Below, one piece after another: positions 11,266 through 64,000 of a DNA stretch of 64,000 bases. The number at the start of each line of letters is the position of its first letter. The first letter of the stretch is position 1. The notes beneath the pieces are model-generated. The model had not been told where the DNA came from. It did no database searches and was given only the letters and a program-made list of their open reading frames with translations. The stretch is from positions 4,316,490 to 4,380,489 of the forward strand of contig OZ199840.1 of NCBI GenBank assembly GCA_964304625.1, in the 5' to 3' direction. A program made the position numbers and the translations under genes. Source of the stretch: Kudoa neothunni. Its lineage: Eukaryota > Animalia > Cnidaria.

Positions 11266-13794
11266 ATGGATTCTCGCTTTGTGGACGTCACTTGTAGATC
11301 TGCGGCTCTTAGAGAAATGTAGTTTTTTAGTTTGTAGCCTACAGATTAGAAAAATATAATAATTTCAACACAGCCCTTATAAACTGTTTAAATTGATGAG
11401 TGATGTGTTTGATGATGATTTTGTTCTGTTTTTTAAGTTAACTTTACGATTAACACTAATATAATTGTTGTCTTACGATTAACTGACTTTTTCACTGGTG
11501 TGTGTATTCGTAGAGAGAAAGGTATTTCAATGTGTGGGAATGAACCCGGATTGTCAGCTATCGAATTGGAAGCCCGTATCTTTTCAAGCTCGAAGGACAA
11601 GGTGATATCGTGTGTTGTTTTCAGGATATTTTACAACATGGTAAAGGCAACCTACATTATCAATATTGAGCGAAGTTTGCAGCTGCTAAGTTAGTTTTTG
11701 AGTGGGTACGATAGTCGACTGAATATATGACGATTAGAGAAAAAGTCAACATTCAGCAATTCATTTGGTCCGAATCGATCAGTTCCTAGTCAAATCAATA
11801 ATTTACCCAGATCAAATTGTAAAATTTTAACTGGATGATCGTAGTTGATGATGATGATGATGATAGTGAATGGAGTGCATTCTTCGCTACCCGCCAACAA
11901 TGGTAATCATTTGATAGCCGAAAGTAATCCACCCCACCTTTTCATATACGAGAACTACGTTTTTTATTATTAGGCGACAATCTGCAGCGAAAACTGTTGT
12001 ATATTAAGTCGTTTCGTACATCGTTGGAGCATTTTATTGCGAATGGTTGTTGTCTTTAAGTTGAATATAAAACGAATAAATGATTTTAGCTTCTTTCAGC
12101 GATTCTCAGAAACGATTCTGTCACACATTGTTACGTTTCATTACAACCCTTGAGAACAATTCGTATGAAACCAACTGCACTCAAACTCTAATATTCTATT
12201 GTTGCTGTGTAGTATTCCATCGTTGGATGTGGCTGATAGATGTGCCAAGGCGTTGGATGCATTGTTTCCTTCTGGGTCCATTGATGAATATCGCTAAGGG
12301 GTCAATCGATTCGCAGGCGCAATTTAAGTCTTCAAACTGTATCAAAGCTCAGCCCACATCTACCAATCTAATTAATCCAACTATAAATACGCCCACTTTC
12401 TCTACTAATGTTGTTGGAGCTCATGCGTCGTCTAATCTAATCAGTTCTAATAAAAATCCCCCTTCATTTGTTCCCAATAACATTGGAACGCCTGCGCACT
12501 CGATACCTAACAACCTTATTAATCCGATTAAAATTCCTACTAGTTTTCCCGCTAATATTGTTGATGCTCGGATGCCTTCAGCATCTACCGGTGTGATTAA
12601 TTCAATTAAGAAGCCATCGATTTTCCCCACCGATGCTATTAGAGCTACGTTGCGTTGCCCACCCGTAGCTCCTACAAGCTCGGTTGCAGTTGAAGCTTCC
12701 ATTGTCGCTGCACAACACGCGACAAATGTCGATCCTACTGTGCAAATTTATAAGAACGGTGAGAGAAATAGGAGCGAAGTCGCTGGGGGTCATGGTGATT
12801 TGATGACCCTGGGTTTGGGCGGAAAGCCGAATACAGGTCAGACTGGCAATGGTTTGCAGTTGGGACGGCTCTCAAATCAGACAGTTGATGACACGCAGTC
12901 AACCCCTAACTGCAACCAGCCAGTATGCCGTAGTGAATGGGGGCAACGTAACAACAGCCGCATTTCAGCCGTCAATTATGACCAAATCGGTCCCAAACAA
13001 CGAAAATCTGTCGTTGGACAGTGATAAAAAACGAACACTCCAAAAAATAATGAATGGTAATAACGATGATCCACCGGCTCCGAAACGGATGAAGATAGAC
13101 TCCTCCACCAACTACCGACTCCAAATCAACAGCACCGAACAACAACCACAACAGGAAGATGATCACTACGCCACCATCCGAGAAATCGGCGCAACTTTAA
13201 GCGAACATTTGAATTCAAAACAAAAATCCAATCAACAACTTAATGCAATAGCTCAGTATTCAATGCTCGTTAGAACCGTAGTAACGGTCCCTGATTTTGT
13301 GAAGAGCACAAGTTATTCCTGTCTGCAGTTGACTCTCTCGCAGATAACACAATTGAGGATGAGTATTTCTCGCCGAATTTAATCTATGAAATATCAAAGT
13401 ATCAGCATCTGTGTGACACCTCGCTACACACCATCGATAACACACAGACAACACATGTTCGTATAAAACCCTGTAACACATACATATACATATATGTGCG
13501 AGTTGGTTGAAATGTTATTAAGCGAGCCAAAACTATGCTGATAACCAAGAAGAGCTATGGTTGGATATTCAGAATGAATTCCCTTTCACTATTCAAAATT
13601 ATAAAATCCACTCAAACCATTTGGGTAATGGTCTGGTTGTGTGTTGATTTTTAGATTGTAGCTTGATGATAGATAACGAAGACAACTGCTCAAGAATGGT
13701 CTCAACTGTTGGTCGTTTGATAGAATCTGCAATTGCCTCCGAATCAACCCTCACACTGGCAGATATTCTTTCTAATCTTTTTAGCAAAAACTAG
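11266..13794 (+). CDS. Probable divergent Mediator subunit 15-like protein (N-terminal KIX-like domain, low-complexity middle, NLS), multi-exon
   Basis: The spliced N-terminus CRSAALREI|EKGISMCG..SAIELEARIFSSSKDK|..YNMVKATYIINIER resembles the MED15 KIX domain. It is followed by an N/P/S-rich region, PAPKRMK (NLS-like) and a C-terminal LWLDIQNEFP..LTLADILSNLF reminiscent of the MED15 C-terminus. Some splice junctions are unresolved. Confidence 0.55.
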
Positions 13795-20363: not shown

Positions 20364-23107
20364 CAGTCGAACCTCGATTATCCGGAAATCGCGTTATCTA
20401 GAAGATATTTTAAATTTTATTTGGATTTTATTGAAATTACTTGTTAAAAAATTTTCCTTTATCTGGAATCTTGGTAAAAGGAATAACTATTTAATCATAA
20501 TTCCGGATAAAAGTACCACCCATCAACGTACAACATGTACAATTTGGTGTATATACCAATAAAATACTTAACCCTTTCGTTTCCAAATTTATTTTGAATG
20601 TTAAATTAATTTTAAAATTATATATAATTTAAAATTTATGCTTTAAACAAAAATTACTTAACATGAATTTAAAGTCTTTTTTTAATCTGTCCTCTAAGGT
20701 GGACAATGGGTATTTATTTATCTCGGCATATTCGCGCATTGGTTACGCGTAAAAAAACACAAAAATATTAAAATTTTAAAAACAATTCCTTTCTTTCTTA
20801 AGACAACACAATAACTGGCATTTCATACATTTAAATTCGGTTCCTTTTGACTAACCATGCATCTTGAATGTGTTGGCATTATTTTGGGGAAATGTCCAAC
20901 CATGTCCAGATAGATTTTATCACTTAATGGACTAGATCTCGTTCTTTTTTTTTGGTGTTGACGTTACTTTTTCCGCCACCAGTTTAATTAAGTGAGGGTC
21001 TACCACGTTTAGTTTGAGTAGTCATTGATCGTTGGTGAATAAGACTTTCACTAACTTTTAAAGAAAAATCCAACGAATCCATTACTTCATTCTTATCAGC
21101 ACGTTTCATGAAACAATTAAGTTTATAAAATAGCCAAGCATTAATAATGCATGTATTTAGAATAAAAAAAAAAAAGAATCTAAATTAATACTTTCTCAAC
21201 TTATGTTTCATAACATAAAGTGACATGAGCATATCTGATAGATCAACTCCGCCCATATTTTGTTTATATTCCTTAACAACAGCTGGACAACCCTTTACTT
21301 TGTTAATACGTATCGTACCAACAGAATAGATATTTCTTCGTTTTAAGAATATTTGCAGCGGGATAGATGTAAACCAGATGTCAAATATGCGAAATATGCG
21401 AAATATGCGAAATATGGTTCGCTCAATGGTAGATTTTCGAACAGCTTTATGACAAAGTTGCCAGGTACAAGACCGCAGGTTTTCGTCAATCGTAAACTAA
21501 ATCATTAACGCCACACTTTGCAAACATTTTATACCCCAATTTTGTTGGTTCATTGGGGATGTATTGCTTGGCCTTTAAACGGAATTATCTGCCCGTTATT
21601 TGAGTGGTTTCTTGCGGGCTCAATCTTCAGAAACGATGCTCTAACAGAATCTAACAAAGGTTTAATCTTAGCGAATTTGTCGTATTTGGACGAATTAGGA
21701 TATGTGATAATTTTAGAATTATCCACGAAATTCAAGTATTTATATATTTGTCCAAAACAGTTCCTTGAGAAAGTCTCGGAAACAAGGGGGTAGTTCATAA
21801 GTTTCAACCAATAACATCGATACCTCGGCATTCCTATTATCCCTATAATAATCAAAACTCCCAGATATTTTTCTATTCTTAATACTAGTTTTGAAGTTAG
21901 CATTTTGTTAAGCAGCGTACAGATTTAATTCATATGCAATATTCCGTATCAACTCACTAGTGACAAAAAATTTGAAATACTCAATGGGTAATATGAAGTA
22001 ACGCAAGTCGCTAAGAATTGTCTAATTGATCTCTAAATTTTCAGCTAGACTTGGAACGTTCTGTTTCTTTCTCCATTTAAAATTAAAATTTGATCGTCCT
22101 CGGAATCACTGGAATCTTGATATGTTTCATCACCCAATTCTGCCTCGTTGTTTGAAATGATAGGACGGTCTGACTCATGTACCATCATATCCGACTCTGA
22201 ATTAACTGCATCCGCAAGTACAATTACTTCTATGATGGTTTTTCTATTTTCTTTTTGACTAAAAACAACATCGTGGTCCAGTAGAATATACTGTTGGAGA
22301 TCCCCGAAACCCCAATGTCCACTATAAAGCCCACGCGGAGATTAGTGTGTGTTTTTTGATATATTTAAATCACACATTAATTAAATTCCAATTATTAAAT
22401 AATCACTTCATTTTTTACAATATTAAATTTTTTCAGTAACATTTGATGATTTTTTTCTACTTATTTTTCCAAATGTTTCAGATTATTTCGGCGTTATAAA
22501 AAAGGAGGGGTTATATCACAAATAAAAATGACTATAAACATTCATTAATATATTATCTCATTTAATGTAAAGAATACCAACCTATGTTTATCCCATTCAT
22601 AAATTATTCTTTTAGTAATTAATTCGCTTATATATACAATCGGATTAATTTTTGACCACTAAAGTGGACAATTGGAACAAAAAGGTTGAAACCAAAATAA
22701 TTCTTGGTTTATTATTTGTGAATTTTTCTCTTTAAGCCTAAGTTAAGTATTTTGTCCTTATTTTAATTCGTACTATATCTGAACATATGCCTGTATGTAT
22801 ATTAAACAGACATTGTTTACGGATTATTTAAAAAAAAGTAGATTACTCCACTGTAAACGTGGTTTTCTCCCATAATTACGTAATATTTTTTTTTCAGTCT
22901 CCGTACTCTTCGTTAATAGATACGTCAAAATTTTTAAACCAAGTTTCAGAAGTTAAATTATTTTACTTAATAAATGGTGAAAATCGTTTATAAATCAATA
23001 ACCAATCTTTTAAGCAGAAATGTTAAAAAAATGTGCGAACACGTGACAATATTTATGTTCGATTAACCTGAACCTCGTTATCCGGAAAGATAATCGAGGT
23101 AAGACTG
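20364..23107. mobile_element. pogo/Tigger-type MITE interrupted by a piggyBac insertion
   Basis: Left end cagtcgaacctcgattatccgg, right end gataatcgaggtaagactg followed by TA. The same TIR family occurs at ~31884 and 56323. Confidence 0.65.
20572..22685 (-). mobile_element. Decayed piggyBac transposon with transposase pseudogene
   Basis: TTAA|CCCTTTCGTTTCCAAAT at left and aattggaacaaaaagg|TTGA at right. Minus-strand fragments YLGVLIIIGIIGMPRYRCYW, DKFAKIKPLLD, QIIPFKG, DIWFTSIPL, SVGTIR, YKQNMGGVDLSD and a Cys-rich tail, broken by stops and frameshifts. Confidence 0.9.
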
Positions 23108-24527
23108 TAACAACAAAAATTAAGAAAACTCTTATTATTTATATATACACGATATATAAATATAATTTTTTTAATCTTTTTTTATGTAATTATTAAATTT
23201 ATTATTTTCTTAAATTATCATAATACGACAATTATTCGAACTAATACATCTTAAAAATAAAAGTTTACATTTTTTCGAAGAATAATTTTAAGAAATTCAT
23301 ACAAGAAAGTGCGAATAACTATTATTTTAAACGAGAAAATTCCTATCTTTTAAAACCAAGCAGTGAATATGTTACATGCTTATAAATTATTATCATATTT
23401 TAGAAAATATAATTTATTTGAATAAAATTTAAAATTTAGCTTCTAAACTTAATAATGTTTAAAATGTCAAACAGTTTTCTTTTGTAATAATAGTTATTTA
23501 AAAATACGTTGGTCGATGCGTTAAATTTTTTAAAACAGATAAAAGATCTAGTAAGAATGTCTTAAAAAATTAAGTTATAGTATAGTATTTAGTGGCTTAA
23601 TGTACCCAAGAATCCAATCTTATATGAACTAGTTTTTCGGCATTAGAATGCTTCAGTGTTTATCGGTCAAAATAACCCTTAATCTCTGTGATTAACAACT
23701 TTAAAATGTACGTTTTAATCTTAGAAAATTCAAAAACGGGTCTTCAGTAATACAAAAAATTAACAAGAAAAAGAAGTAAGTTTGAAAATTAATATATGGG
23801 GATCTTTACTAATCCCATGTAAAATAATGCAAATGCGTCAAGTGTAGACAATCAAAGTTGATTAAAAACAAAAAATATTTAAAAATACAACTTGTGTATA
23901 ATTTAAAAAAAATAAAACTCTAAAAATCAAATCGATTTAAATAGATGGGAATAATTATGTTTTTATACTTTCGAGGCAATATTCCCACACTAATTTCTTT
24001 TCACCGATAAATTCATATTACATCATTCTTTATATTACTTCGTAAAGTAAATTAATTAAGGAATTATTTATTGATTTTTCTTTTAATGTTGTAGAATCTC
24101 TAGATTTATCACCTTTGATTCTGTTCCCTACATTTTGATTAATCTTTAATGCTTTGTTATCACTTATTATTATAAAGTTATTTTAGTTGTTCAATCAGTA
24201 TGAATCTATTTCTTTTATTTATAATAAAGATGGTCGGATTTCGCTATTATGAGGTATTCTAAACTATGCGATACGAGTTATGAGTCGCAGGGATTACGTA
24301 TCAGTAGGTTCTATTTTAAAAATTATCACGTGACATCCTATATTTCTATTTGATCTCAACCTATCAAAATCTATTACATAGAGAACTTAAAATATCACCT
24401 ATATTTTAATTTACACAACCTAGCAACAAAACATACCGCTGCCTGCCTAGTGGTATTCCATATAGGTCACGCGCTTATATATCACTGCTTATAGATTGTG
24501 TTAGATTGTCGTATTAGCACTGTATCG

Positions 24528-27500
24528 ATGATAATTTGCGGTTCTTTGTTGAAGGTTTATGGTTTCCGCAACCAAATAGCAGATAAGTCTATTTTTTACT
24601 CAATGAGATCGTATGCGACAACTACTGGCTCCCATCGTTGTGGAGTACTTCGTCACATTCCTTGCATCAAACGAGACGAGATTTTGAGTGAACTTGATGA
24701 GAGTTTCCATGTGGAAAGATTGCATGAAGTCAACTTTGGTTTGTATTCGGATGTGCTACTGGATGTGAACGGTTCGCTTGATAATATGCGAGCATTGATG
24801 AACAAATATTCCTATAAAAGTAATCCCGCGCGTTAATTTCTGTGTAGAAATTGGACCGATTTTATCTCAATTGTTAATAGATACTTGTGGGACACATTTT
24901 GAAGTTCTTCCAAGTCATCTAGAACAGTAGATTTTATTTTCTCAAATCGACAACATTATTGATTCGTCATTAGTGTTGTTAAAACTAACTTTATTGTGAA
25001 AAAAATCTACCAACCCCGATACATGCTTCCTAATGTGCAAGTGTTGTTTTCTAATGGTGCCGGCCCAACCAAATATCACATCCGACTGAAAAATAGTTCC
25101 GATTTTAAGTTAATTCGCGATTTGGAACGGAATGAAACATCGCCCGGTAATTACATATGAATTTTTCCACACGTGATTATCTCTATCAAAATATGTTAGA
25201 ATTCAACTATAAACCAGCGGTGATTTTAGCCTACTTCAATCACACCAAGTAATTTTCCTGTTTTGCTCAATAAATTGTTGAACTGCAACCAGCTAAAGCT
25301 AACGTTGATATTTTAAGCCAATTGTTTCATATTTGTGTTCCAAAAGAAATTAGCTAACTTTTGTTGATATCGCTTTATTTTTCTGTTGTAATTGTTGCTG
25401 TAGTTACTAAAAAACTTAATAGATTGCCATTTGGTATCGTTAAGCTGTTTAGAAAAATTACTTATATCAAATGTTGACTAAAAATTTAACTTAAGGAGTT
25501 TCATAGAAATAGCTTAACAAAATAATGGCTTAAATAGTTGGGTTTTTTTGAATTTTTTTCTTTCTGAAATAAAGTGGTATATTTTAAATGTATAGTTACC
25601 GCGTAAAATAAAGAAGCGAATGTGTCCCACAACGAGTGTTAAGTTGAGTTTATCAATTTGAAAAATTTAACTCTGTGAGGTAATAGTCGGCTATAATATG
25701 TTAAACTGATTCTACCTGACAGCAAAATTTTTCTGAGATATTACACAATTTTTAGGGGGACATGGGCTCGCGTTACTTATTTATTTAATTTAATGTGCAT
25801 GTGCGATCTAATATTAACTTTTGGTGGTAACAAACAACATTTTAAGATTGATATGCAATATATTGATTATAAAAATGTGAAAGACAAACTAATTCGCATT
25901 ATAACTATTAGATTAACCGTCGGTTAATTTTCAAACTACTGATTCAAAAATATAAAGTTTAACAAAATAATATAAGCTTATTTCTCGACATTACCATCCT
26001 CAATGAAAGTACATTTACATTCTCTTATTGTTAACTAATTTCATCTAAACACATAACCCCTATTTCCATTACAGTAAGGTCTCGACGTTGCACACTAAAT
26101 CGGACCTGAGCTTTTACTGTTCAGTAAGAAATCACCGCCCCAATTGAGTTTTGCGCCAACGCTATTAGAATAAATTTTCTATTTTTTAACGAAAAAATGA
26201 TCTTCTTTGTTTGTAATATAGATTAAGAACGTGAAAGACATCGAACTAACAGTATATAACTTTTAATCTTTTTTTAGCGAACTTTTGATCAAGAGTTTTT
26301 AAAATATTAAAGAAATAGTTGAGGACATCAAAAAAATTTGTTGATCGTAATATTTAACACGTAAATCGTTAATTCCTTTATAACATTGAGTGTCTTTGAA
26401 TTTACCAATGACACTATGCGGAAATTTTTTCTTGTAAATTGACCAGTCTATAATGCGTTGACGGGTCTTTTTTATTGTTTATTTCCTTTTAATTTTACTC
26501 ATTCTTTATTGGATTCGTTCGTTGAGTCCATTTTTTTGATTAAAAAAGCGATCTCGTTGAGATTTAATATTTTTCTTTTTTCATATCTATTTATTGACTC
26601 ATAAAATTGGTTTCCCTAATCATAAACAATGTCATAAACTTTCGGCGCTTCTTTGTGGAGAGTGAATTTAAAAAAACAACAAATATTTATATTTTAAAGC
26701 AAATCTATGCGCCAACTGAAATCAGTGAATTTGCTATCATGAGCATCAGTAATGTCAGCAATCTCAGCAATAGATTTTGTTTTTTGAGTGTTCAAAAACC
26801 CTAAAATATTTTTCTTTTTTTCTGTTCAGAAATATATAGAGGTATATAGCTCAATTTCAAGTTTGAAATAGTTGATTTTGTAATCCTTTTAAGAATTTAA
26901 ACAACATTGAAATTCATTTTATTTGATAAAATTCTATTCAGAGAAGAATAACCCACTCTAATTCTAATTTGTACAAACTCACAATAACTGAATACATGAT
27001 ATTCTATGGCGCTCTAGAGCCATTTATTGACATTTCAGATTGATTTAATCGAATAATAATATTTAATAATTTTACAGATTTCTTTTTTCTCTCTCACAAA
27101 ACCAAACGTTTGAACGTGCAACTTAGTGGATTAATCGAATTAAAATTTGGAATAACTACTGCCCAATAATAAGACCCTGAATTTCACCAAAAATGTGTCA
27201 AACATATGTTCTTTCACATTTTTGTTATATGATAAACTTACATATTATATACATCGAAAATTTTACAATGTTGAAAATAGAAATTTAACAATGCCAACTA
27301 CCTTATATCTAACCTCGCAATATCGAGACCTTACTGTAAATAACAATCAATAGTTATATATATGTAGGAGCGTGTTATGATTAATTTCTGAGTGATGTTC
27401 ATCGTTTTATATACTGATTATAATAGTGCTGCTAAATTCGATCCTACTCGTCTGCGCTTAAAACCCTCACATGCTAGCATTGGCTCAGGCCTTAGGAACA

Positions 27501-29639
27501 TTGATTGGAGGAGTTTCAGTAATCGATACAATGTGAGAGTGGTTAATAAATCCAATCAGACTGTGATACTTGAGCCAAAGTGTGTTGAATCTTATATTGG
27601 TCTGATGTCATTGGACCCCAATTCTCCTCTCACCCCAGTCGTTTGTTCTCCTATGTTCGTTTCAAACGATTCAATACTATCGAAAAGCTTCTACTCAACA
27701 ACTGATCATTTTTTGGTTCAATGTAGTTCAGGCCAACTTTGTCCGAACGGAAATGAATCTGATTCAACCAAAGTCACAACCTCACAATTTCTTCCAAATA
27801 AAGTTAGCGTGATCACAAATTGTGCTGATGAACCCTTTAAATTTGTCATAAAACACGAAGGTTACACAGATGGCGTTCCATTCGACAATTTTTTTAATCC
27901 TTCTACGAGGCCAATTTTAATCTCTAGTATGGAACCCGTTTCTATGCCTATTCGACCTCAAATAACCACAAATATTATTCAAATATCTTCTGCAAAAATT
28001 GGGACTCAACAGTGGGAAAATCATTTACAACCATTGGTAGCCAAACTGTGTAGATATCATACCAAATCACTCAAACATCACAAGTTCTATCTGAAATCCT
28101 ACGAAAACTACATCGAATTTTACAATAAAACTCTCCCATTAAGTAAGTTTTGTTGTTGTATTCTGGTTATTATTGACTTTATTTTCTATATTTGATTATT
28201 TATTATCATTAGGACCTAGCGAGTATTTAACCAACATCAAAGCTACCACATTGGGACATATGGCTCCTCACCTTCTAAAGTATAAGAAGTTTTTATTCTA
28301 TTTTATTTTCCAGCCAATGCTTTTCGTTCAAATTTAATTTGTTAAAATATTAAATAAGGGCTCTATATCCATGGAAGTGCGATCGCTGTTTTACTGTTCA
28401 GATGCCACACATCTCAAGGAAAGCTGTTCGCGATCTTTTTGGTTCTATTGAGCTTGAGTCTATTTATATACCATCCGCTATGGGTCATAATAATAATAGG
28501 TAATATTTCGAGAGCGTATAAAGGAAAAACGCCGATAATTAGTTTGAGCTCAATTTATACAGTTGTTCCATAAATAAATGTGTGTAATATAGTTCAAATA
28601 ATTCGGAAGAAGATGAGGGACTCGAATCAGTTACACCCATCAAATCATCATCTGGAAGTGGTAATTTGTGGATGTTTTCGTAATTCAAGTCATGTTGATT
28701 CTAGATTCAACCACCGTTCCCTCTATAGTCAATAAAGCTTATGTAACAATAAAAAATCCACAGCAATCTGAAGAATGTGTATATCTCAATGGAAAAAAGA
28801 GATGTATCATCAACAAGCACTCTATTTGGAGTTCGAATGAGGTGGATTCGGTTCCAATTCTAAATGAATTTTCCATTGATGGTATAAGTGTCGATGTGAC
28901 ACTTGGTGATATTAAGAAATGGTTGGGTGAGATTGAAACAAATACCATAGTTCGAGATGGCTCATCTATAAGAATATTCCTGAGTAGTTGCAAACAAATT
29001 GATAAATTGTTAACCCACAACTTTACCATGTTCGATAACAACTTCATAACTATCAAACAATCGACTATTAAAGTTAACGAAGCATTGTAATTGTTTATAC
29101 ATATGTATAATAGTTGTGGATATTATTTTCTAAAGGTCGGATATGGTTGTGCATTGTTTCGTCAAGGATACCACTCAAGATTCTTTTGACGCACTTATCG
29201 ACTGGTGCAGTGGTGTTCCGGTTCGAGCATACGCTAAAAGTGAACATTTTGAAAACTGTTTTCTACTCAAAGTGGCTCCTTTTGATATTAAAAATCTACT
29301 TTTCCGTTCTGGTTCCAAGGGTAACTTTTTCATGACCAATAATAAGTGGGTCTAACCTAATTTTATGGCGTTATTTTAGATTATATGGGGAATGAAATAT
29401 TTCTAAGATATGCACCAAAGCGGTACGAGAAAGACATTGAATTTTGCAGTATCAATCAGAAAGTCACCAACGATAACTCTACAGTTGATTCTATGCCTCG
29501 AATGGTGGCTAACAAAGACTCTGAATCGAATAATGTTCAGCATAACGGTGATAACTCCCACCAAGATGATATTGATGGTAACCCGGGCAGAAAGCGGCCA
29601 GAATCAAGTTTAAAAGCATCTGATGATTTTATTGTTTAA
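24528..29639 (+). CDS. Uncharacterised multi-RRM-like protein A, putative mitochondrial presequence, multi-exon (paralogue of 33097-36054)
   Basis: Exons join in frame across tiny introns and across a ~2.2-kb pogo-containing intron (donor ACCAA|gtaatt ~25249, acceptor ataatag|TGCT ~27426, both phase 2). It has repeated beta-alpha units (e.g. NEFSIDGISVDVTLGDIKKWLG..IRIFLSS) and aligns by eye with gene B. Confidence 0.7.
26072..27336 (-). mobile_element. Degenerate pogo/Tigger element inside an intron of gene A
   Basis: Perfect 14-bp TIR CAGTAAGGTCTCGA / TCGAGACCTTACTG with TA on both sides. Weak remnants resembling a DDE transposase (..LKTLDQKFAKKR..) on the minus strand. Confidence 0.8.
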
Positions 29640-29961
29640 CCATTTTCTCAAATTTTCACTTTCTCCCTTTCTGTTGCGGCTTCATACTTTTTTAGCTGTA
29701 TAAATACCATTAATGTTTTCCTTGTTATATATTTATTATTTACAAAGTTTTACCTTTCGCGGTTGACTAAATTTTTTAGTTATTTCCGATAAGATGATGT
29801 TTTATCAATTCAGAAATAATTTATTCCATAGTTAAGAGACAATGTATGAACATCTACGTTAACTATTTTATTTCCTGCGTATTAGTTTTTCGTTTTATAA
29901 TATAATTCATCGTTATGTATAATGGCATGTGATAATATCTTTTTGGATTCAATAACAAATA

Positions 29962-31795
29962 CAGTCGCGTCTCGATATTGCGTAATATTTTGGGCCGGGG
30001 AAAAATTACGCAATATCGAGTCATCTACACACGCATAATAATTTATAATTTAACAATTATTACAGAATAACTCATCTACTTGATATTTTTTATTTATTTA
30101 TTGATAATTTCGCGTAAGGCATCTCTAACTTGATGTATAAAGAATAATTCAATAGGATTCTTAATGACACATTTTTCGCGGATTTATAAGATTTTATACT
30201 TTAAACTTTGTAACGACTTCATCGTTGTGTATGAGATCAAAATCTTCACCCCAAACGAAAATTTACCTTGTTCATCTTAAATTAAAGGTAAAATTCCGTT
30301 TTCTTCCAAAAAATAATATCATTACACATATGAATAATAAAATTTTTCTATTAATTACTTTATAATGTCATTTCATCTTCACATTACTTTGAGGTTTTCT
30401 ATTACTAATTTTCCGATAAAAATGAAAAAATCAATTATTTTTGTTTGAAAATGGGCGTCTTATTGATTCAAGTACTAATTTTTTAACCGTAACCATTCCC
30501 GAACCAATTTTGACGTATTTGAGTAATCGAATAAGGCATATTTAAATATCTTTGAGTCCTTCTCTCCGAAAAGCTCATTATGCATAATATTTTCCTCTAA
30601 TTGGCTTTTAAGCGATGATTTATTCCTAGATAAATTGGTTTCACCACACAAGCAATGTTTTTGATAGAAGTAGGAGCTAGACGTTTTCGAAATAATCGTT
30701 CAATTAAGGATAATATGGTCTCTGTTTAATAAAATAAAAACCTTTCTGTTTTCTTTAACGAACCTCTGGTTTATGTCCATGAGGATCTGATAAAACATAG
30801 ATGAAGATAATCACCCATTCATTCGCGGATGGCATCAACCTGAAAACTCTTTATTTCCTCTAAAACAACGATTTTTCTTAAAACTTTATTGTGTGTAATT
30901 GAAATTTTTCTTCGGTTATTGTAGCAGTGATAAGCAGCAGAGCATGCTTTTGAATTGTTTTACACACAAACATTGTGTTAATTTTTAATAGTGGACGTAC
31001 GCTGTATTAGCCATTCAAAAAAATGAGCTGTATCATCCAAATTAAACCTGTATTCTGGATTGTAACTTGACAATATCTCGAGAATATTTCTCATCCATAG
31101 ATAAATATATTTAAAATCAGCGCTCTCGTCCTCCGTGCGATTTGAGTTTTTTCAGACCGCAACGCCTTCTGCAATTATTAAACTAACCCTCGGTTCCACT
31201 AAAATCTTTTATTCAAATTTCTTTGGAAATAATACAAGATTATTCGATCATTACAAAACTAGATAATAGCTTTTTTCTCGCATTGAAACTACCCAATTGT
31301 AAAAATTATTTTAATATCTTTATATTTTTGGGGCTTAAGTATTTTTCCAAATTTTGAAATTTTTGAATCTATGGTTTCGTCTTGTTTGGGAAAACTTCTA
31401 AAAATATTTAAATAACCAACTTTAAATTATCGGACAATATTTATGTTAATATAAATCGGTAACCCAAAACGTCTTACAGTAATATCATTAGCACCCGATA
31501 TAGACCTAAAAAAATTATATTGATCAATTATTTTTATTAATCTTCATTAGTTATATGAGAATTTGCAATGCTTTTTATAGTGCATCCATCAGATTAAGGG
31601 GATTAAAATCAAAAAATGAGTTACGCAATAGCTAGACACAAGATTTTTCCTAATTTCCATTATATCCACATGTTCAAAATATTTGTTTGTTCGTATAATT
31701 ATCCATTCAAGCATACTAAATATGATTTTTACGTTCTATTTAGTGAATTAAAGCACATAATGCTAATAAAACTAAATTACGCAGTATCGAGTCAC
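29962..31795 (-). mobile_element. Decayed pogo/Tigger transposon with transposase pseudogene
   Basis: TA|CAGTCGCGTCTCGATATTGCG terminus. Subterminal aaattacgcartatcgagtc repeated at ~30003 and ~31775. Minus-strand remnants GTEG*FNNCRRRCGLKK..ESAD and YNPEYRFNLDDT resemble pogo motifs. The right boundary is approximate. Confidence 0.7.
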
Positions 31796-31883
31796 AACTA
31801 TAGATTATATGAAATTATGAGCGCTTCATCATGAAGATATTTAGTATTTCGATATTATGGGTCATAATATAAGTTTTCCTGAT

Positions 31884-31920
31884 ACAGTCGAACCTCGATT
31901 ATCCGGAAAATCGGAGGCCA
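31884..31920. mobile_element. Isolated left TIR of the pogo-type MITE family
   Basis: TA|cagtcgaacctcgattatccggaaa, identical to the 20364 terminus. Confidence 0.65.
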
Positions 31921-31928
31921 GCAATTCT

Positions 31929-32447
31929 CTCTTAGCCTAGACAATATGGCATGATGGTGTTAGGTCGAGGTCGAATGCCCTGTGGTGACGTGTTTGAGGC
32001 CTAGTCCGAACGTTCCTGTACTCCCAACCCAAAATTGAGTAGGAAGGCTGTATTAAAGTAGTAATAGTATAGATCTACGATTTATTGAGGTTTTGCTCGC
32101 AGCTGGGAGTGGAGCCTGGCGGAAGGGTAGAACTCGGGCGCTCATAAATGCCGTGATACAGGAACGAAATACAACCCTGCAAGGGGTTTCCGTAGAGCCA
32201 ACGCTCCCATTCAGACGATTTTCCCAGACTAATTCTGGGCTAGTCCAGGGTATGATTAGGGTGGTGGTTGCTCTGAATCAAGGATGTTTAATGACTTAAA
32301 TTCCCACACTACCACATAAACGTAAATCGCCTTAATACGACGCTTCGATGTCTACAGTGTAAATGAAAAAGGCCTAACCGGCCCGAACTTCACAACCTAA
32401 CAAGTTGAACCAAGGATTTGACCTTGTAAACAAAACAAAACAAAAAC
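31929..32447 (+). mobile_element. Possible tRNA-derived SINE or other retroposed element
   Basis: GC-rich island of ~520 bp with an A-box-like tagcctag, a B-box-like aggtcgaatgcc and an (AAAAC)n tail. Confidence 0.35.
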
Positions 32448-33096
32448 TAACACAAATATTGGGCTTTAGCCATAATAATTTATGAGCATAAGGGTTATTG
32501 AAACTCTTTAATGCTATAGATTATTGCCGGATTCGACAAATTACATCTGATAATGTAAATTCGATGACTTGGTTTTGGCGTAAAATGTTTCTAAAGAATG
32601 TTTGCTTTATTTTCATTGATTCAAATACATACCAAGTTAGATTCACTCATATCATTAACATTAATTAATTCCGTATCGAAGCATTAAATGAAGATTGGTT
32701 CATAGAATTATTTTAACTTTATGGAACTAATCCACGTGTGTGACTTATTTAATAATTTACTATGTATTTAATATTACTATCTTTGTTAAGAATCTTTTAA
32801 TTTGCGAAAATATAGTAAAATATCAACGGAAAATGATTAAGGTCTCTAATGGACCTCAATGTAACGCATGTAACATTTGGGTGCGTAGTTTTTTGAGCGT
32901 TAAAGTTTACAAATTCAAAAAAAAACAATTTTTCTAAGTTAATGTTTCATACAAGATTTTATTAATATGTTTAACAGTCACTTGAATTTTATTTTAAGCG
33001 AGCTTTGAAAGAAACAAAAAATAAAGATTTTAATTAGCAACAGATATAAACGTTGGTTATCAATCTATAAATGAGAAATCTACTACGATATAAAAT

Positions 33097-36054
33097 TCAA
33101 ACAAATTTTAAACGGTTTTCCTTTTGGAGCCATTGTTGGATTTCGCTGATGGAGCAGTTTTGAACGACGATTCGACTGCCATCGTAATCTAAATAGAAAT
33201 TATATAAATTTAGTCAAATGATGTTTAAGTTTATTGAGATGAACAATATCTCAATAGCTCCACAATGTAAGACAAACAAGCCTACTTATTTCCCCAGATC
33301 GTTTAAGTAGGCCTGATCTGAAACATGTTTTACAGGGGATATAAAAGCAGTTGGTTCGATTATTAAATTTGAGTGTTGTTGAGCTGTATGGAAAAAGCCA
33401 ATCCGAAAGGTAATGAATGGTGTTTGGCTCGATTTGGTCGACTATAAGTTTTAGCCAATTGTTCGATCTAAATTCCAAATAGATAAAAAATTCTCCACAT
33501 TACATCAAACTAAAATACGCGGCATCATCACAATCATCGTAGGTAGGATGAATAAAAAGAAACGACGGATCGGAAGTAGTCCCAAAATTATGGAAGGTCA
33601 TGTTTAGTTGTTGAAGCTTATCAATGTCAGCTTCGGAGCATAAATAGACAACCACACTTCCATCGGGGAGGATTTCATAGGAGTTAAACGCTATCCCATC
33701 GAGCAATTGATCTACTTGTTTGGTCGTAGCGTCAATAGGCGGAATACCCTCAATTCGAAAACAATTCAGCGAAGGTACTTTACTACAATAATACAAATGT
33801 AAAAACACCAGTTATCCAGCGATTTTCCATACCCAGGAGCATGGTTCCAAAAAGAAGACATTCTCACCGAAATATCCTCCTTGCCATTGAGAAATAGTAG
33901 TCGATCGCCATCGACCTGATATTTTAATTTTACACAGTAGATGGGGTTTTTATCTTCGGTAGATGCAGATGATGGACGAATAAACGAATGATTGCTAAAA
34001 AAACTACCAACAAAATAATTTATCGGACTGAAAAATGCCTAACTCACCTTTGATACGAGGTAGGATTTTCAATGCAATGCACATGAGAATAATCAACACC
34101 TTCCAGCAGTTCATCAACCAATTTCCTGTTCAAATTGTGTCCTGTAATTTGAAACGTTTTTTTGTCTAACCAAAAGTGATAAAACCTACAACCACAATGG
34201 TAAAAGTTGATATTGACGCCATAACACTAAAATTAACTTGCTAATATCTCCCCCGAAATAGGATGACAAACACTCAAATGTTGTATTGTATAGCATGGGA
34301 ACTAAATAACAGCAGATGAACTACGAATCCATTGAAGCTAATAGTTACTTAGATAGCCGTAATTTCTGTACAACTTGGCAACACCCTCGTAACATTTCAT
34401 GTAAAGAATGGATGAAAATCTCCCACGATCCACCTTCCACACCTCATCCCTCATATGGGTCAATAGGGACTGAAGTTGTTCTTCGGTTATATTGTAATGA
34501 TTGATGAAAATTTGGTTAGTGAACAATAATGATTTATGTGGAATTGTGAATTCTTCGATATTACACTCATAATTGACAGATGCAGGTAATAATTCCGATA
34601 TAATTTCTTTGCTGTTGCTATGGGTTTTGAGGAGAATAGAATGAGATTTCTCATTCAATCTATGATCCATTACATAGCTGTTTCTGGGAATAATTTCCGT
34701 TAGTCGAGAGCATGCTTCTTCAAATGACATATAATCGTTATTCTTGTTACTATTGTCAGTAGATCTATTGTTCACTTCGTTCAACAGTTGCGAAAGACCC
34801 CAGTCTAGATGGGAAGTTTTCGAGTTGATACAGTTATTTAGTGCAGAGGTTCGATGAACATTTTGTTGAGGATCAAAATGGAAAAACTTTAAATTATCAT
34901 TATTGGTTTTAAACAAATTTAAGAACAAATAATTTTCGGATGATTCGTATCCATAACGATTGAAATATTTTAATGCGCGCAAAAAAGCCAAATGTGTGGG
35001 TGGATTGTTTGAAACATTGGCAGAGAGCAACTTCACAAAACCATGCTTTGTTAATGGTTTAATAATATCCTTCTTCTGATACCAACCTGATTTAACGAAA
35101 GTGGTTGTTGAATGCGGTTTACTGTTAGATGGACGAAGATCATCATGATTGTCACTACTGTAGTGAACGCACTTGACTGGAGCAAGTAGAAGCGAATCTG
35201 AAGAGAACTTATCCAAATAACTACAAATTCATATTAGGTGTATTATTAGTGATGTTGTCAGTAGATAGTAGTTATCTATAGAATCAATCACTCACTTTGA
35301 ATAATTAAAGTTCTCAAGCTGAAAAATTGATTTAGTGGTGGGAAATCCTACAATGCAAGCATATGTGATACCGTGAAATTAGAATAGTAACGAGAATAAG
35401 TTTTAAGAATTAATGTCTGGAAACTACCTGCGAAGAGCAAATCAGGATAAGCGCGCAAAAAATTTTTAAGCCATCCACAATCCCTAAATCTGTAATAGGA
35501 GTGGAAACGATGATCGAAAACAAAAAGAATGTCGTTTTTGTCGAAAAATGGACTCTCAATCAACTTTTTATCGATAATTACGTCCGTTTTTAAAGCACTA
35601 ATCCGATATATATAACTCATATAACCAATCAATAAATCTTACTGAGCCACATGCATGGGTATATACTCAACTTCAAACCTTCGTTGAACGTCTTTATTCG
35701 AAAAAAATTAATTTAACAACCACTATCAAAATATCTACAAAATTACCACCATATTCAGTTAACTTCTTTCAAATACTCAGCCACATCCAGTGGGCACTCC
35801 ATAAACATGTTTAATTTATTTTGAATCATCAGATGTTTGAAAATGGTAACATTTTCTTTCAATTTTAAAGGAGGAAACAATTTAGTGTAATCTTCATTAG
35901 AGATATTCCTAATGATAATATTCACTGTAGGAACGATATTTTTTGAATCTATCTGAGGAAAACAATCCTTGCATAGATTTCTTTTTCTATGCAAATATAA
36001 TGTAGATAATATAGTGTTCGAACGGCAAAAAACACGCCAAACATAGGGTTGCAT
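33097..36054 (-). CDS. Uncharacterised multi-RRM-like protein B, putative mitochondrial presequence, multi-exon (paralogue of 24528-29639)
   Basis: ORFs 35755-36084, 35348-35632, 34338-35216, 33500-33808 and 33251-33478 are linked by tiny introns. The final exon reads NYDGSRIVVQ..RLKFV*. It shares motifs and intron phases with gene A. One junction near 35700-35760 is unresolved. Confidence 0.7.
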
Positions 36055-37194
36055 TTGGCAGCGCGCGCAGTGTAGTTGATGCAATATTGCAAATATGGTT
36101 GTCAGATTGACGAAAAAAATTCAATAGAATTAATTCGAAATAGAAATTTAACATGAAATATTCAGATACTACGGGTGCGTTATTCAAAAAATATGAATCT
36201 AATATCAAGTTAATATTTTAAAAATTTTCGTGAAAATAATGACTATATAAAAATATTTAATTGTAGTTTTATATTTGTTTTAAATTTCAATAGTTAATCT
36301 AAATTTCGAGACTGAGTTGATCATCCGAAGTTTGTCAAAAAATAACTAAAACTATGTCTACTGATTATATAAACTAGCGGGAGCTTTTTAACTTAGGCCT
36401 AGGTCGGGAAAGTCTACATTGAAAAATCTCTTTAACTTTTTCATGCAAAAATTTTTGGTTGTTGTTTGAGGATAATATATTATGTAAAATTGTTTAGTTA
36501 GAACGGTTTCAAAAGTTAAAATGCTCAAAAAAATTTGTTAGCCATTTTAATCAAATTTCAGGAAAAATGGAAATTAAATAAAAGTTCCATTCATACGTAT
36601 CATAACCACGTAAAAATTTTACATTGCCTCTAAAATGCTTTGAAATTTTTTTTTATTTAATTTGCGAACAACGGCCTGATTAGTCAATTTAGTTACGTCG
36701 ATCAATTTGTTTTGTGGGTGCGCGACAATTTTAATGCCAACTTCTAATTTTCAAATCTAGTCTATTTCTAAGCACATTTAGAACCGATGATTTAAAAAAA
36801 AAGGTACAACAGATTGAGCTTTGGTATATAAATTTTTTTTACTTGAAATAGGCCCATTATATAATTATAAATAAGGAGAACAATGATTTATTTGATTATA
36901 AACAACAAAAATCCCCGCATAACTTTTAAAATTAATTTCTCAATTTTAAAATATATATATATATATAGTTTGAAACTATAGAAAATTATGTTTTAGAAAA
37001 AAGTACTAGGCTATTGCTACGGGAGGGGATACGATTTCGAATCCAAAATTTCATTTAAAATTTGAAATACACCTTTATAATTAATAATTTTTACCCTACC
37101 ATAATTAGCATTTTAATAGAAATTTTGAACTATGGAAATTTTTAACATTGTGGCTATAATTTTTGTGTTTTGTTTTGTTATAAATAATAGAATA

Positions 37195-37264
37195 CAGTCG
37201 GCAACAGATTTTACGTATTTTTCCCCCAGTCCCATGAGGATTACGTAAAATCGGTTACCCACTG
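37195..37264. mobile_element. 70-bp miniature TIR element (Tc1/pogo-type)
   Basis: Arm CAGTCGGCAACAGATTTTACGTA versus reverse complement CAGTGGGTAACCGATTTTACGTA (20/23), with TA on both flanks. Confidence 0.7.
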
Positions 37265-38091
37265 TAATCTCATTTCAGTTTATTACATAACCTTACATTT
37301 AGCCAAAGTAACTGATAATATATTTTTCTAATTTTTTTTATTTCTTTATAGAATTATGTTATAATTAATATAAATTATTGCATTATTAAAAGTTATTTGT
37401 ACTTTTCAAATTTTTATAACTTGACAGTAGATCCATTGAAAAAAATTTAATACAAATGATTTGCTTAACATATCTGGTTATATGAATTCAAATTTGCAGT
37501 ATCATTATTTTGATATTGATCGATTTTTATTTAATTTAATATCAATAGGATAGAGATTAACAATATAAATTAAATATAATTATAAAAAAATTATAAATCT
37601 AGAATTTTTCCAACATTATTAATTAAGAACAATACAAAGGAGGGAATCTAAGGTATTTTTTACATTCTTACTTTAAGAAAATCCGAAAGTTTCATACAAT
37701 AATAAATTTAACCTTAACTAATCAATTAATATAATTTATATTATTTTAAATCATAAATTGAAAAAAATGACAAATTTTGGTATGTATTAAAAGGAGATTA
37801 TTTTCATTACCCGTTATTTGTTCAGTATGAGAAAGTGAACGTGGTCTGTTCTTCTCGCTAATTTATTTTGGATAAAAATTCATCTGATAACATCAAACAA
37901 GCCGTTAAGAGGATTTCAATATTATTTTAAATAATAATATTTTCCTGACTATATATACGATCATTAATTATTGAACATGTGACTAAAGTTATTCAGATTC
38001 TATACATTCAATAGTTACTCGCATAAACCCTTTAATATAGATTAATAGCCGTAAGCCAACTAATTATTTCGTATGTTCATAATATCTACAA

Positions 38092-58277: not shown

Positions 58278-59633
58278 CTAATTGAGTTGATCATTGATAA
58301 ATTTAACGATCAGTTCGGCAGCTTGGGAGGTGTACTCATCCAAAACAAGTTTTGATCCATTGTCGAAACCTTCGTATATACGTTTTCCTGGGAAAATAAA
58401 ATCAAGTATGTCACCTTTGCTGTTTCTATCTGGATTAACAAGACCCTCAATGAGGAGCACTTTCGGTTCAATGAGTATCATAGGGATAGATTCAAGCCTT
58501 CGAAATACCTCTTCACTGTAGTACTCAATGTCAGGTCGTCTCCAATATCTCAAAGTGAGTTGAGAAAGATTTGGGTTTGATTTAATAAGTTTAAGAAAGT
58601 GTTTGTATTTACGTAGAGATTCAATATTTACCGTGGTAGCACAGAATTGTCGGATACAATTGGATTCAAAATAGTCCACACCTCGGTTGTTAAGGCAGGA
58701 ATTGATGGGATTGAAGATCAAGGGGTAATTAAAAATTTTCGCTTTATCGGTTGAGCGTAGTTTTACGTTGACACACACCAAATGAGTATATAGTGATGGA
58801 GCCAGCAATGCACTTCGTATGAGTAGATCAGCGCCGGCACCCACCCCTATAGCAATACAGGATTCAGTTTTTAAGTTTTCTGTTATTAGGATTGTAATAA
58901 GTTTTGACAACTCAGAAAATCCTGGGTAGCGACGAATCATCGCACATCTCTCCATGCTACTATGTCCAGGCAAACATATATGCCAAATATTAAAGTTTTC
59001 ATTTGTTATAATATCAGAAAGTATTGGGGCTGAGAAGAGTGTTTCAAAATTTGACTTGGAGTTGTGAACAATATCATGGATTGTAATGATGGTTTTGAGG
59101 TCGCCACATCCATTTTCGGAGCTGTATTTGTAGATATCAAAATCTATACCGCACACGGAAATGATTTGTTTGTTTTGGTCGCTGAATACATTCTCACTTA
59201 TTTGTTTATAATGTTGAATATCGTTATTTTTGGTTGCAGGTATCAATCCTTGAAGGCATACTCGTAATCTTTGTTTTACCACCATTTTTCGTTGTTCTTT
59301 TGGGGTGAAATGTGGTGTGGAATTTTCGTTTGATGAATAAGTTTGGTTACTGCCATTCACTCTATGTGGGTTAAACATCCTCTTAATGCTATTTCTCATT
59401 TTTTTGAACCTATTGTTTCCAACGTTAGATGTGGGTTTCATGTTGATTCCATTCGAGTTCAAAGTTATTTGGTCGATGACGTCTTCATCTGGGCGTCTTA
59501 AATTATCTTGGTTGATATCATCTTCAAATTTTAATGTAAAAGAATTTCTTGAGAGTATGGTGGAGGATTCATCCAGGGGATATTTTTTGGAAGTATTTTG
59601 GGGCGTTGGGCTACATATTCTATCGGTGAACAC
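58278..59633 (-). CDS. NDRG-family (alpha/beta-hydrolase fold) protein with N-terminal extension; additional 5' exons likely up to ~60.0 kb
   Basis: IITIHDIVHNSKSNFETLF, WHICLPGH, YPGFSEL and IAIGVGAGADLLIRSALLAP..LVCVNV correspond to NDRG motifs (TYHDIG.NH, HVDAPGQ, YPSMDQL, IGMGTGAGAYILTRFAL). Confidence 0.85.
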   Translation of the reverse strand: MFTDRICSPTPQNTSKKYPLDESSTILSRNSFTLKFEDDINQDNLRRPDEDVIDQITLNSNGINMKPTSNVGNNRFKKMRNSIKRMFNPHRVNGSNQTYSSNENSTPHFTPKEQRKMVVKQRLRVCLQGLIPATKNNDIQHYKQISENVFSDQNKQIISVCGIDFDIYKYSSENGCGDLKTIITIHDIVHNSKSNFETLFSAPILSDIITNENFNIWHICLPGHSSMERCAMIRRYPGFSELSKLITILITENLKTESCIAIGVGAGADLLIRSALLAPSLYTHLVCVNVKLRSTDKAKIFNYPLIFNPINSCLNNRGVDYFESNCIRQFCATTVNIESLRKYKHFLKLIKSNPNLSQLTLRYWRRPDIEYYSEEVFRRLESIPMILIEPKVLLIEGLVNPDRNSKGDILDFIFPGKRIYEGFDNGSKLVLDEYTSQAAELIVKFINDQLN

Positions 59634-62917: not shown

Positions 62918-64000
62918 TTAACTAAAGGTATGAATTAGAATGAGAAAACAAACAAAAAGGCCGTACGGTGCTGATTTTTTAGGTAACCCACTGGAAGTTG
63001 ACGAATAGCTGCTATGAGTAGTGGAGACAGTAGGGTTATGAGAAGAGATAGAGGTTAATGGTTGAACGTTTTTGAGTCCGATCTTTTTGTTGATAATACC
63101 ACCAGTGAGAGGCGATATGGAACCATCCCCTTCAAATCTAGATTTATCGGATATAGTATGGTAGGCGTTTGGAGTTTTGTTGATCACTGATCCACCAATC
63201 GAACTTCCAGCATTATTTGGATGAGTTAAATGGAGGACGGATTGATTGAAGTTTAATTTGAACCAAATGATCAGATCCTTGAACGAAGGATGAATAACAT
63301 CTCTAAACTTAACTCCCTCAGGTCCTATGGACAAATATTCAAAAACGGGTGTGTTTCTCGGCAGAAATCCCAATAACAATTTTCCGGGGTAGATTTTTGA
63401 AGGCGAAAACACATACGGAATACGCAGTGGATTGGTTTTTTTCTCTTCAGACAAAATGGAAGCCATCTTATGACGACTGCCACCTTCAGCGTAGTTGAAC
63501 ATCTTGAGGGTGGAAGCTTCTTTCATCAGAGTAGACATAGGTTCGATATGGCGTGCAATGATTTCATCCAAATCATCATAGCATTCGCCTTTGATCCAGA
63601 GTTTCTTGCCGAGACTGAAAAAGTTTGGTTTGTCTTTTTCGATAACATCAATGTGGCTGTATATGCTATCGTAAACTTTCCAAGTGACAGTAAGATGGTC
63701 GGCCCCTTTGCTAGAAGGACGAATAATACACTCACCGACGGGAGCAGATTCCAAAAGTTTCTCGGCTTCAGTGAAGGTGACATTTTTGAACGAAGGATGT
63801 ATGATGACCTTTTTATGGTAGATAACTTGTTTCTTGAGTTGTTCTTTTTTCTCTTTTTTCAATCGACGTTGTTCTTCCTCCGCTGTCAAGTCATAGTAAG
63901 CATCACGTTTAAATTTGTAACAGTTGTTGGGTTTATCACAGAGATCTGACGATCTGCAAGTGAGATCAACAGAAAGTCGATCAAATTTGATATTCAATAC
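62918..64000 (-). CDS. SUPT6H: Transcription elongation factor SPT6, 3' part (tandem SH2 domain)
   Basis: KVIIHPSFKNV..GECIIRPSSKGADHLTVTWKV..HIDVIEKDKPNFFSLGKKLWIKGECYDDLDEIIARHIEPM is the hallmark SPT6 tSH2 sequence. The gene continues beyond the window, and the last ORF residues are probably intronic. Confidence 0.96.
   Translation of the reverse strand, partial: VLNIKFDRLSVDLTCRSSDLCDKPNNCYKFKRDAYYDLTAEEEQRRLKKEKKEQLKKQVIYHKKVIIHPSFKNVTFTEAEKLLESAPVGECIIRPSSKGADHLTVTWKVYDSIYSHIDVIEKDKPNFFSLGKKLWIKGECYDDLDEIIARHIEPMSTLMKEASTLKMFNYAEGGSRHKMASILSEEKKTNPLRIPYVFSPSKIYPGKLLLGFLPRNTPVFEYLSIGPEGVKFRDVIHPSFKDLIIWFKLNFNQSVLHLTHPNNAGSSIGGSVINKTPNAYHTISDKSRFEGDGSISPLTGGIINKKIGLKNVQPLTSISSHNPTVSTTHSSYSSTSSGLPKKSAPYGLFVCFLILIHTFS

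Follow-up and report, generated by a model that had tools for sequence, protein, structure and literature searches.

Two tail-to-tail paralogues of a putative tandem RRM-fold family in the myxozoan parasite Kudoa neothunni

Tandem modules of ~80-90 aa on a single chain characterize the multi-RRM proteins Prp24 (4 RRMs), raver1 (3), IMP3 RRM12, SFPQ/NONO and RBM19/Mrd1 (6). Other members of the fold, i.e. the qRRMs (hnRNP F/H, GRSF1, Glorund), RBM12 and proteins of the PARP14/RBM43/NMI type, lack the classic RNP aromatics; non-canonical RRMs, qRRMs included, bind RNA even though they have no RNP motifs. The genes analyzed here, A and B, lie in a window of 64,000 nucleotides from Kudoa neothunni and code for proteins predicted to have the same kind of tandem modules and likewise without these aromatics. 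Unlike Prp24, raver1 and RBM19/Mrd1, however, the Kudoa family has neither sequence similarity to them nor RNP1/RNP2 motifs or a Pfam RRM match; it has more units (a predicted eight) and no accessory domains, and in contrast to Prp24-type proteins it is detected only in Kudoa-like genomes. We consider it fairly probable that A and B are intact members of a small family of tandem degenerate RRMs, which originated by inverted duplication and forms a multivalent array for binding RNA or RNPs.

At least four members are present in the ~40-Mb genome: A, B, C (C3:5.898 Mb, ~1,030 aa) and D (C2:2.00 Mb); a fifth one, E, is possible. The first-pass annotation had described a pair of paralogues, which is correct for the tail-to-tail arrangement of A and B but not for the size of the family. 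The genome consists of three chromosomes plus a mitochondrial genome, with 30.4% GC, a median intron of 49 nt and ~46% repeats (PMC12239612).

Table 1. Gene models of A and B. Positions are those of the window; unit numbers refer to the predicted RRM-like modules.
Feature	Coordinates	Strand	Content	Basis or junction
Gene A	24528..29639	+	8 exons, ~749 codons	
A exon 1	24528..24819	+	ATG 24528, basic N-terminal leader, most of unit 1	open frame; donor GTAATC, then phase-1 intron of 28 nt
A exon 2	24848..24926	+	ends in FEV-L-P-x-H motif	tblastn with C; donor phase-2, within His codon
A exon 3	24974..25146	+	unit 2	junction enumeration; following intron 2,246 nt, contains dispersed repeat
A exon 4 (large)	27393..28146	+	~units 3-5	267-codon open stretch
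A exon 5	28359..28483	+	unit 6 start, Y-P-W-x-x-D motif	z 3.7 vs B stretch 34226-34047; donor GTCATA weak
A exon 6	28705..29086	+	unit 6 end and whole unit 7	BLASTP E 5e-8 vs B; profile E 2.7e-9; RRM-only fold matches
A exon 7	29136..29320	+	unit 8 first part, ends in LLFRSG motif	tblastn with C residues 674-714; phase-1 donor GTAACT
A exon 8	29380..29639	+	unit 8 end, short acidic tail, TAA stop	junction and stop; profile match to C positions 726-772, E 0.13
Gene B	36054..33097	-	~10 exons, ~754 codons	
B exon 1	35777..36054	-	ATG 36054, basic leader, unit 1	open frame, junction
B exon 2	35643..35678	-	FEV-E-Y-I-P-M-H motif	His-codon phase-2 intron as in A
B exon 3	35372..35597	-	unit 2	
B large exon	34372..35220	-	~units 3-5	296-codon open stretch; aligns to A large exon
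B exon	34048..34185	-	unit 6 start, Y-H-F-W-L-D motif	junctions; tblastn match with C 459-508; z 3.7 vs A
B exon	33833..33994	-	unit 6 end	z 5.9 vs A exon 6
B exon	33504..33782	-	unit 7	BLASTP E 5e-8 vs A; profile E 2.7e-5; 13 invariant columns in four-way alignment
B exon	33286..33467	-	unit 8 first part, ends in LLKRSG motif	tblastn with C
B last exon	33097..33188	-	unit 8 end, TGA stop	

A and B are intact, collinear and very old paralogues. BLASTP aligns the exon at 28668-29090 of A with that at 33500-33808 of B (E 5e-8, 36% identity over 87 aa), and the large exons match with an E of 0.004, the aligned part of A being its C-terminal 75 aa. When the genes are compared exon by exon in a matrix of Smith-Waterman z-scores, the collinear diagonal reads 1.8, 2.4, 3.7, 5.9/12.4, 2.1 and 2.9, versus about 0 +/- 1 off the diagonal. 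A profile built from C and its orthologue retrieves exons of both genes out of 1,950 ORFs of the window (A, E 2.7e-9; B, E 2.7e-5). By these sequence comparisons, the similarity exceeds chance expectation, and the lengthwise alignment proposed in the first-pass annotation, whose quoted peptide strings were all found in place, is significant; A-B identity since the duplication is now about 20-35%. All searches with A and B were made exon by exon rather than with a joined spliced protein.

Four introns are common to A and B in position and phase. Junction analysis confirmed the two that had been noticed earlier: one, in phase 2, splits the His codon behind the FEV motif, and the other, in phase 1, follows the (L)L.RSG motif. 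The remaining two, also phase-2, precede the Y-x-(x)-W-x-D motif and separate unit 7 from unit 8. In B, FWNHAPG (exon 33833..33994) is followed by a phase-2 intron that also occurs in the orthologue of C. According to the model we favor, A and B would have arisen from an ancient inverted local duplication at the DNA level and diverged afterwards.

With GT-AG introns, the exons join into in-frame chains of 2,250 nt for A and 2,265 nt for B, with an exon GC of 37.5% and 36.0%, respectively, and ~30% in the short introns. Some junctions are less clear than others. In B, the transition from exon 3 to the next exon is ambiguous, with either a 23-nt mini-exon (35318-35296) or a donor at 35352. In A, the introns of 212 and 221 nt are putative and have weak donors: exon 4 ends at GTTTTG (28146), while the GTAAGT at 28142, although it fits the consensus, does not match the phase of the acceptor that homology supports. 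The ~2.2-kb intron of A houses a transposon-like repeat of 1.27 kb, which is intronic, not exonic. One copy, more likely A than B, could be a decaying pseudogene with long open exons as leftovers, and the repeat together with the two weak donors that A requires (GTTTTG, GTCATA) would fit such a fate. Yet all exons are open, the chain from ATG to stop is divisible by three in length, the repeat spares the exons, and the contrast between 37.5% GC in exons and ~30% in introns resembles that of annotated Kudoa genes (PMC12239612). Moreover, by our estimate about 8% of random codons would be stops in sequence with ~30% GC, so that open exons of 250-296 codons are unexpected in decaying sequence. 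We therefore regard pseudogene decay as very improbable. Scans of positions 23000-37500 for Rfam families and tRNAs gave no matches.

The best evidence for the fold comes from unit 7 of A (28815-29087), for which the AF2 model has a pLDDT of 85 and a pTM of 0.71. Foldseek returns 50 PDB matches with E <= 1e-3, and all of those among the matches listed are RRMs, RRM-like domains or complexes that carry them; similarly, in a shape search of the ESM Atlas, 10 out of 10 among the matches listed belong to RRM_1 families (TM 0.71-0.78). The best Foldseek match is Glorund qRRM2, and raver1 RRM1 bound to vinculin superposes with an rmsd of 1.1-1.2 A over 70 residues. Hence, the modeled unit has the size (~80-90 aa) of the RRM superfamily and superposes on solved RRMs, and we predict this fold for units 7 and 8. 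The model of C displays eight beta-alpha-beta-beta-alpha-beta units, but its mean pLDDT of 49 indicates low confidence, so that six of the eight are defined by their secondary-structure pattern only. Its top Foldseek matches are the multi-RRM proteins Prp24, SFPQ/NONO, hnRNP A2B1 and raver1; proteins of this type are likewise top matches of A unit 7. The chain of RRM-like domains suggested initially thus holds for A unit 7 and, at low confidence, for the C model, whereas the original estimate of 5-7 units gives way to about eight. By analogy to C, A and B probably contain about eight units as well; their middle units may tentatively be taken as RRMs from a weak collinearity with C.

Feature searches with a protein language model served as a lead only. 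Every match that bears a Pfam family belongs to an RRM-type family, and the nearest clusters (PARP14-type RRM, NID, RBM43, RBM12) score 0.77-0.83, with 0.78-0.83 for the PARP14/RBM43/NMI type, below the lead threshold of 0.9. GRSF1, hnRNP H and RBM12 also appear in the structure-match (VIA) lists; the likeness to hnRNP F/H-, RBM12- and PARP14-type proteins is at the level of fold or features only and tied with that to ordinary RRMs. For the large exon of B, the feature search gave only weak PPR-like rows; this candidate was rejected, as a score of 0.77 is noise, there is no Pfam PPR match, and the homologous region of C is modeled as alpha/beta.

We propose that the proteins, ~750 aa in A and B and ~1,030 aa in C, would consist of a basic N-terminal leader and about eight degenerate modules of ~90 aa each, arranged like beads on a string. 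The non-canonical RRM surfaces of such an array could provide multivalent contacts to RNA or RNP partners, and the paralogues would then serve different RNAs or compartments. RNA binding is suggested by the predicted fold alone, and this suggestion is weakened by the lack of RNP1/RNP2 aromatic motifs and the near-neutral net charge. Strict and loose regular expressions for RNP1 and RNP2 matched no exon of A or B and no part of C or its orthologue, as the first-pass annotation had stated for the canonical motifs. The net charge, counted as a sum over separate pieces of ~740 residues in all, is ~+6 for A and ~+2 for B, and the structured part of C has a pI of 6.3.

These properties would also suit pseudo-RRMs that make protein-protein contacts as a scaffold or adaptor instead of binding RNA. 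The best structural matches of A unit 7 include two assemblies with degenerate RNP positions, namely the protein-binding raver1 RRM1-vinculin complex and the PID-3/TOFU-6 RRM-RRM dimer. A heterodimer of A with B, as partners in the sense of the first-pass annotation, would be hypothetical. RRMs that bind RNA reach equal scores, however, and the matches do not discriminate between the two functions; besides, C has a long basic tail (pI 9.95), and the established RNA binding of non-canonical RRMs speaks against a strict dependence on RNP motifs. A purely protein-binding role appears to us somewhat unlikely.

The family appears to be restricted to Kudoa-like genomes. An exhaustive phmmer search with C against 1.84 billion proteins detected one orthologue and nothing else; it lies on a 19%-GC Logan contig, is 39% identical to C and comes in pieces of 452 and 464 aa. 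No matches were obtained in protein homologue searches with the large exon of A, in a profile word search or in a homologue search with C whose length filter excluded the 452- and 464-aa pieces, and sequence searches of the PDB with C and a unit-7 profile gave chance-level matches only. Pfam hmmscan at E <= 1, with ten exon translations and C, predicted no family of the RRM clan; these queries and further ORFs matched only unrelated families below threshold, and PF23085, PF23222 and PF07292, which represent the PARP14/RBM43/NMI-type RRMs, were not hit. Our sequence searches thus reveal no detectable relatives outside this myxozoan parasite group, and neither full-length orthology to a well-known protein nor any known family emerged for genes whose family the first-pass annotation had not recognized.

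Still, myxozoan proteins change at a very high rate, and even within the genus Kudoa orthologues are assigned to no more than about 66-83% of the genes (PMC12239612). Because Kudoa evolves so rapidly, "lineage-specific" may mean nothing more than "diverged beyond recognition". The family could accordingly correspond to a multi-RRM protein conserved in metazoans that has become unrecognizable in myxozoans, for instance an RRM array of the RBM12, RBM19/Mrd1 or PARP14 N-terminus type, its orphan status being an artefact of rate. The low identity between C and its sole orthologue and the RRM-type feature neighbors described above, as a lead, agree with this, but the absence of any sequence match in Pfam, the PDB, the phmmer database or the profile word search does not, and eight units behind a leader, with no other domain, fit none of the named candidates exactly. 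We judge this explanation to be unlikely. A maximum likelihood tree of the unit-7 sequences of A to E and the C orthologue was discarded; its branch lengths were absurd and none of its branches was starred. In a MAFFT alignment of C with the exons of A and B as separate rows the fragments were scattered, so it was set aside.

Myxozoan genomes contain many uncharacterized orphan genes. For one such family, this analysis predicts a tandem-RRM fold, counts the copies, supplies gene models and outlines how it evolved; annotation based on homology hints would probably overlook it. The family is new, yet plausibly just one more ordinary entry among the very many RRM proteins, and extreme divergence is expected in this lineage.

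A more specific role would place the arrays in an organelle. Should the proteins bind RNA, and above all should they act in mitochondria, they would be candidate components of the apparatus for expressing the aberrant mitochondrial genome of Kudoa. In a bolder scenario, eight pseudo-RRMs that follow a presequence could handle the extremely divergent transcripts of that genome, with A, B, C and D each dedicated to different mitochondrial RNAs as myxozoan-specific RNA-binding arrays. Their role would be akin to that of the PPR, OPR and RAP arrays of plants, algae and apicomplexans. The parallel with PPR, OPR, HPR and RAP proteins is an analogy only, in that modules behind an N-terminal leader are expanded in a lineage and evolve fast; those arrays are alpha-solenoids, whereas the Kudoa family is predicted to be of the alpha/beta RRM type. 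We think this scenario quite improbable. As to a possible organellar location, the first 20-30 residues have few acidic residues and a net charge of +3 in A, +5 in B and +3 in exon 1 of C, and the helical hydrophobic moment reaches a maximum of 0.45-0.64 in the three, which is compatible with a presequence but not diagnostic.

All peptide strings that the first-pass annotation had quoted for the tail-to-tail genes A and B were found, and its claim that the two genes align lengthwise is borne out by comparisons at the exon level. A 28668-29090 matches B 33500-33808 with a BLASTP E-value of 5e-8 and 36% identity; the large exons, which would carry about units 3-5 of the putative successive RRM-fold modules, match at E 0.004. 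In an 8 x 8 matrix of exons, Smith-Waterman z-scores follow a monotone diagonal (1.8, 2.4, 3.7, 5.9/12.4, 2.1, 2.9), and the off-diagonal scores scatter about zero. Furthermore, an independent profile, for which a third paralogue (C) and its orthologue were the sole input, was searched against 1,950 ORFs of the window and matches an A exon at E 2.7e-9 and a B exon at E 2.7e-5. Together these results argue that the A-B similarity is real and collinear.

Both gene models were obtained by enumeration of in-frame GT-AG junctions, the sequences being handled exon by exon. The A chain consists of eight exons (2,250 nt with the stop codon) and the B chain of about ten (2,265 nt), both divisible by three. 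Exon GC reaches 37.5% in A and 36.0% in B, compared with about 30% in the short introns. Intron lengths are mostly 28-98 nt; B has one longer intron of 186 nt, and two longer introns in A (212 and 221 nt) depend on weak donors. At one site in A, where homology calls for a weak donor, a consensus GTAAGT donor precedes it by 4 nt but does not share the phase of the acceptor that homology supports; alternative splicing, mis-splicing or a minor error in the sequence may account for this conflict.

Four intron positions are common to A and B in the same phase. Two of them had been proposed from the raw sequence and were recovered by the junction enumeration, namely the phase-2 intron in a His codon after the FEV motif and the phase-1 intron after the L-L-x-R-S-G motif; the others, both in phase 2, lie immediately before the Y-x-(x)-W-x-D motif and between units 7 and 8. 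A phase-2 intron of B between units 6 and 7 is missing in A, and the C orthologue has it at the identical place and in the same phase. These shared introns point to a DNA-level duplication of an intron-bearing ancestor as the probable origin of A and B.

The proposed pair is indeed paralogous, but the family has at least four members, since the genome search adds C and D. Paralogue C has an open stretch of 1,008 codons, and between the FEV motif and the C-terminal SG motif its order of segments follows that of A and B; its tail of 280 aa is basic and of low complexity, with a terminal motif conserved in the C orthologue. The gene is not intronless: a 5' exon of 20 codons, beginning M-L-R-F-A-S-L-K-K, is followed by a 42-nt GT-AG intron and then the long open frame. 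Paralogue D matches the unit-7 profile at E 2.6e-6 and is laid out like A and B, with smaller exons on the 3' side of a large one. Candidate E, a weak match (iE 1e-4, small database), is a possible fifth, more distant member.

Coordinates of the features at the locus and of further family members (C3 is contig OZ199840.1; unprefixed positions refer to the window)
Feature	Position	Strand
Highest GC in the window	12080-13382	+
Gene A	24528-29639	+
Intron 3 of A	25147-27392	+
Dispersed repeat in intron 3	26070-27341	
Consensus donor (28142) and weak donor in A	28142-28146	+
Unit 7 of A, folded piece	28815-29087	+
Dispersed repeat in the A-B spacer	29957-31802	
Gene B	36054-33097	-
NDRG-family ORF	58278-59633	-
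SPT6 tandem SH2 region	62918-63997	-
Paralogue C, open stretch	C3:5898473-5901496	
Paralogue C, full extent	C3:5898386-5901496	
Paralogue D	C2 about 2000245-2003697	
Candidate E	C2 about 3.0958 Mb	

The reading of each protein as an RRM array is largely right, though probably with about eight units instead of the roughly 5-7 claimed. Unit 7 of A, folded with a four-way alignment (13 invariant columns), gives a model with pLDDT 85, pTM 0.71 and the topology beta-alpha-beta-beta-alpha-beta. Foldseek against the PDB returns 50 matches at E <= 1e-3; those listed are either single domains of RRM or RRM-like type or complexes that contain an RRM, including Glorund qRRM2 and PID-3/TOFU-6, and RRM1 of raver1 superposes at 1.1-1.2 A over 70 residues. 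In a shape search of the ESM Atlas, all ten rows are RRM_1 families (TM 0.71-0.78), so that the RRM-like fold suggested for Foldseek checking is found in this piece by both searches. Language-model features of C point to RRM-type clusters below the lead threshold; a feature search with the large exon of B gave noise only. As had been noted, canonical RNP1/RNP2 patterns, strict or loose, are absent from A, B, C and the C orthologue.

Judged by the modelled fold and by the arrangement of units in tandem, the proteins may bind RNA or RNP partners multivalently. RNA binding by the family is still a conjecture, about as likely as not; a protein-scaffold role of pseudo-RRMs is less likely. The RNA reading is weakened by the missing RNP aromatics and by the near-neutral charge (net +6 in A and +2 in B; in C, the structured part has a pI of 6.3 and the tail one of 9.95). 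A, B and C each begin with an N-terminal leader that is basic and has few acidic residues, which would fit a mitochondrial presequence but does not prove one. An A/B partnership and the label of a lineage-specific system are conjecture.

The family had not been recognised at first reading, and a Pfam search of its sequences found nothing. An exhaustive phmmer search with C among 1.84 billion cluster representatives yielded only two proteins (E 4.5e-62 and 3.5e-12), both on Logan contig SRR31175926_18419 (run SRR31175926; 3,574 nt, 19% GC). They are the halves of one C orthologue, split at the unit 6/7 boundary by a 31-nt phase-2 intron, and they align to C along its whole length; the source is presumably another multivalvulid myxozoan. 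Word-based protein searches with C, the large exon of A and the C profile gave no match. Within reach of these methods, the family appears confined to Kudoa-like genomes. Because proteins evolve very fast in Kudoa (PMC12239612), such confinement is no proof of a de novo or lineage-specific origin. The family is a sequence-orphan variant of a well-known multi-RRM architecture, in a lineage with many such orphans.

Dispersed repeats have shaped the spacing of the locus. Intron 3 of A measures 2,246 nt and owes its length, unique in this gene, to a repeat of about 1.27 kb. The genome has at least 54 copies of this repeat (67-79% identity), spread over all three large contigs; at one of its ends, short matches of 28-29 nt run in the opposite direction, a hint of terminal inverted repeats as in a MITE or DNA-transposon-like element. 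A second repeat of about 1.85 kb (at least 40 copies, 75-85% identity) makes up most of the 3.4 kb that separate A from B, and therefore the genes formerly lay about 1.5 kb apart.

The window was placed at C3:4316490-4380489 in an assembly of 40.26 Mb in four contigs; the published assembly of Kudoa neothunni comprises three chromosome-scale scaffolds and a circular mitochondrial genome, with about 46% repeats, 30.41% genomic and 36.8% exonic GC and a median intron of 49 nt (PMC12239612). Its genes were predicted with protein hints only, because parasite RNA reads were almost absent (PMC12239612). GC of the window is about 30%, with a maximum of 40% over a stretch containing a 314-codon ORF without Pfam match. 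The NDRG-family ORF (Pfam Ndr, E 1.4e-20) and the SPT6 region (SH2_2, E 5.5e-66) are ordinary conserved metazoan neighbours.
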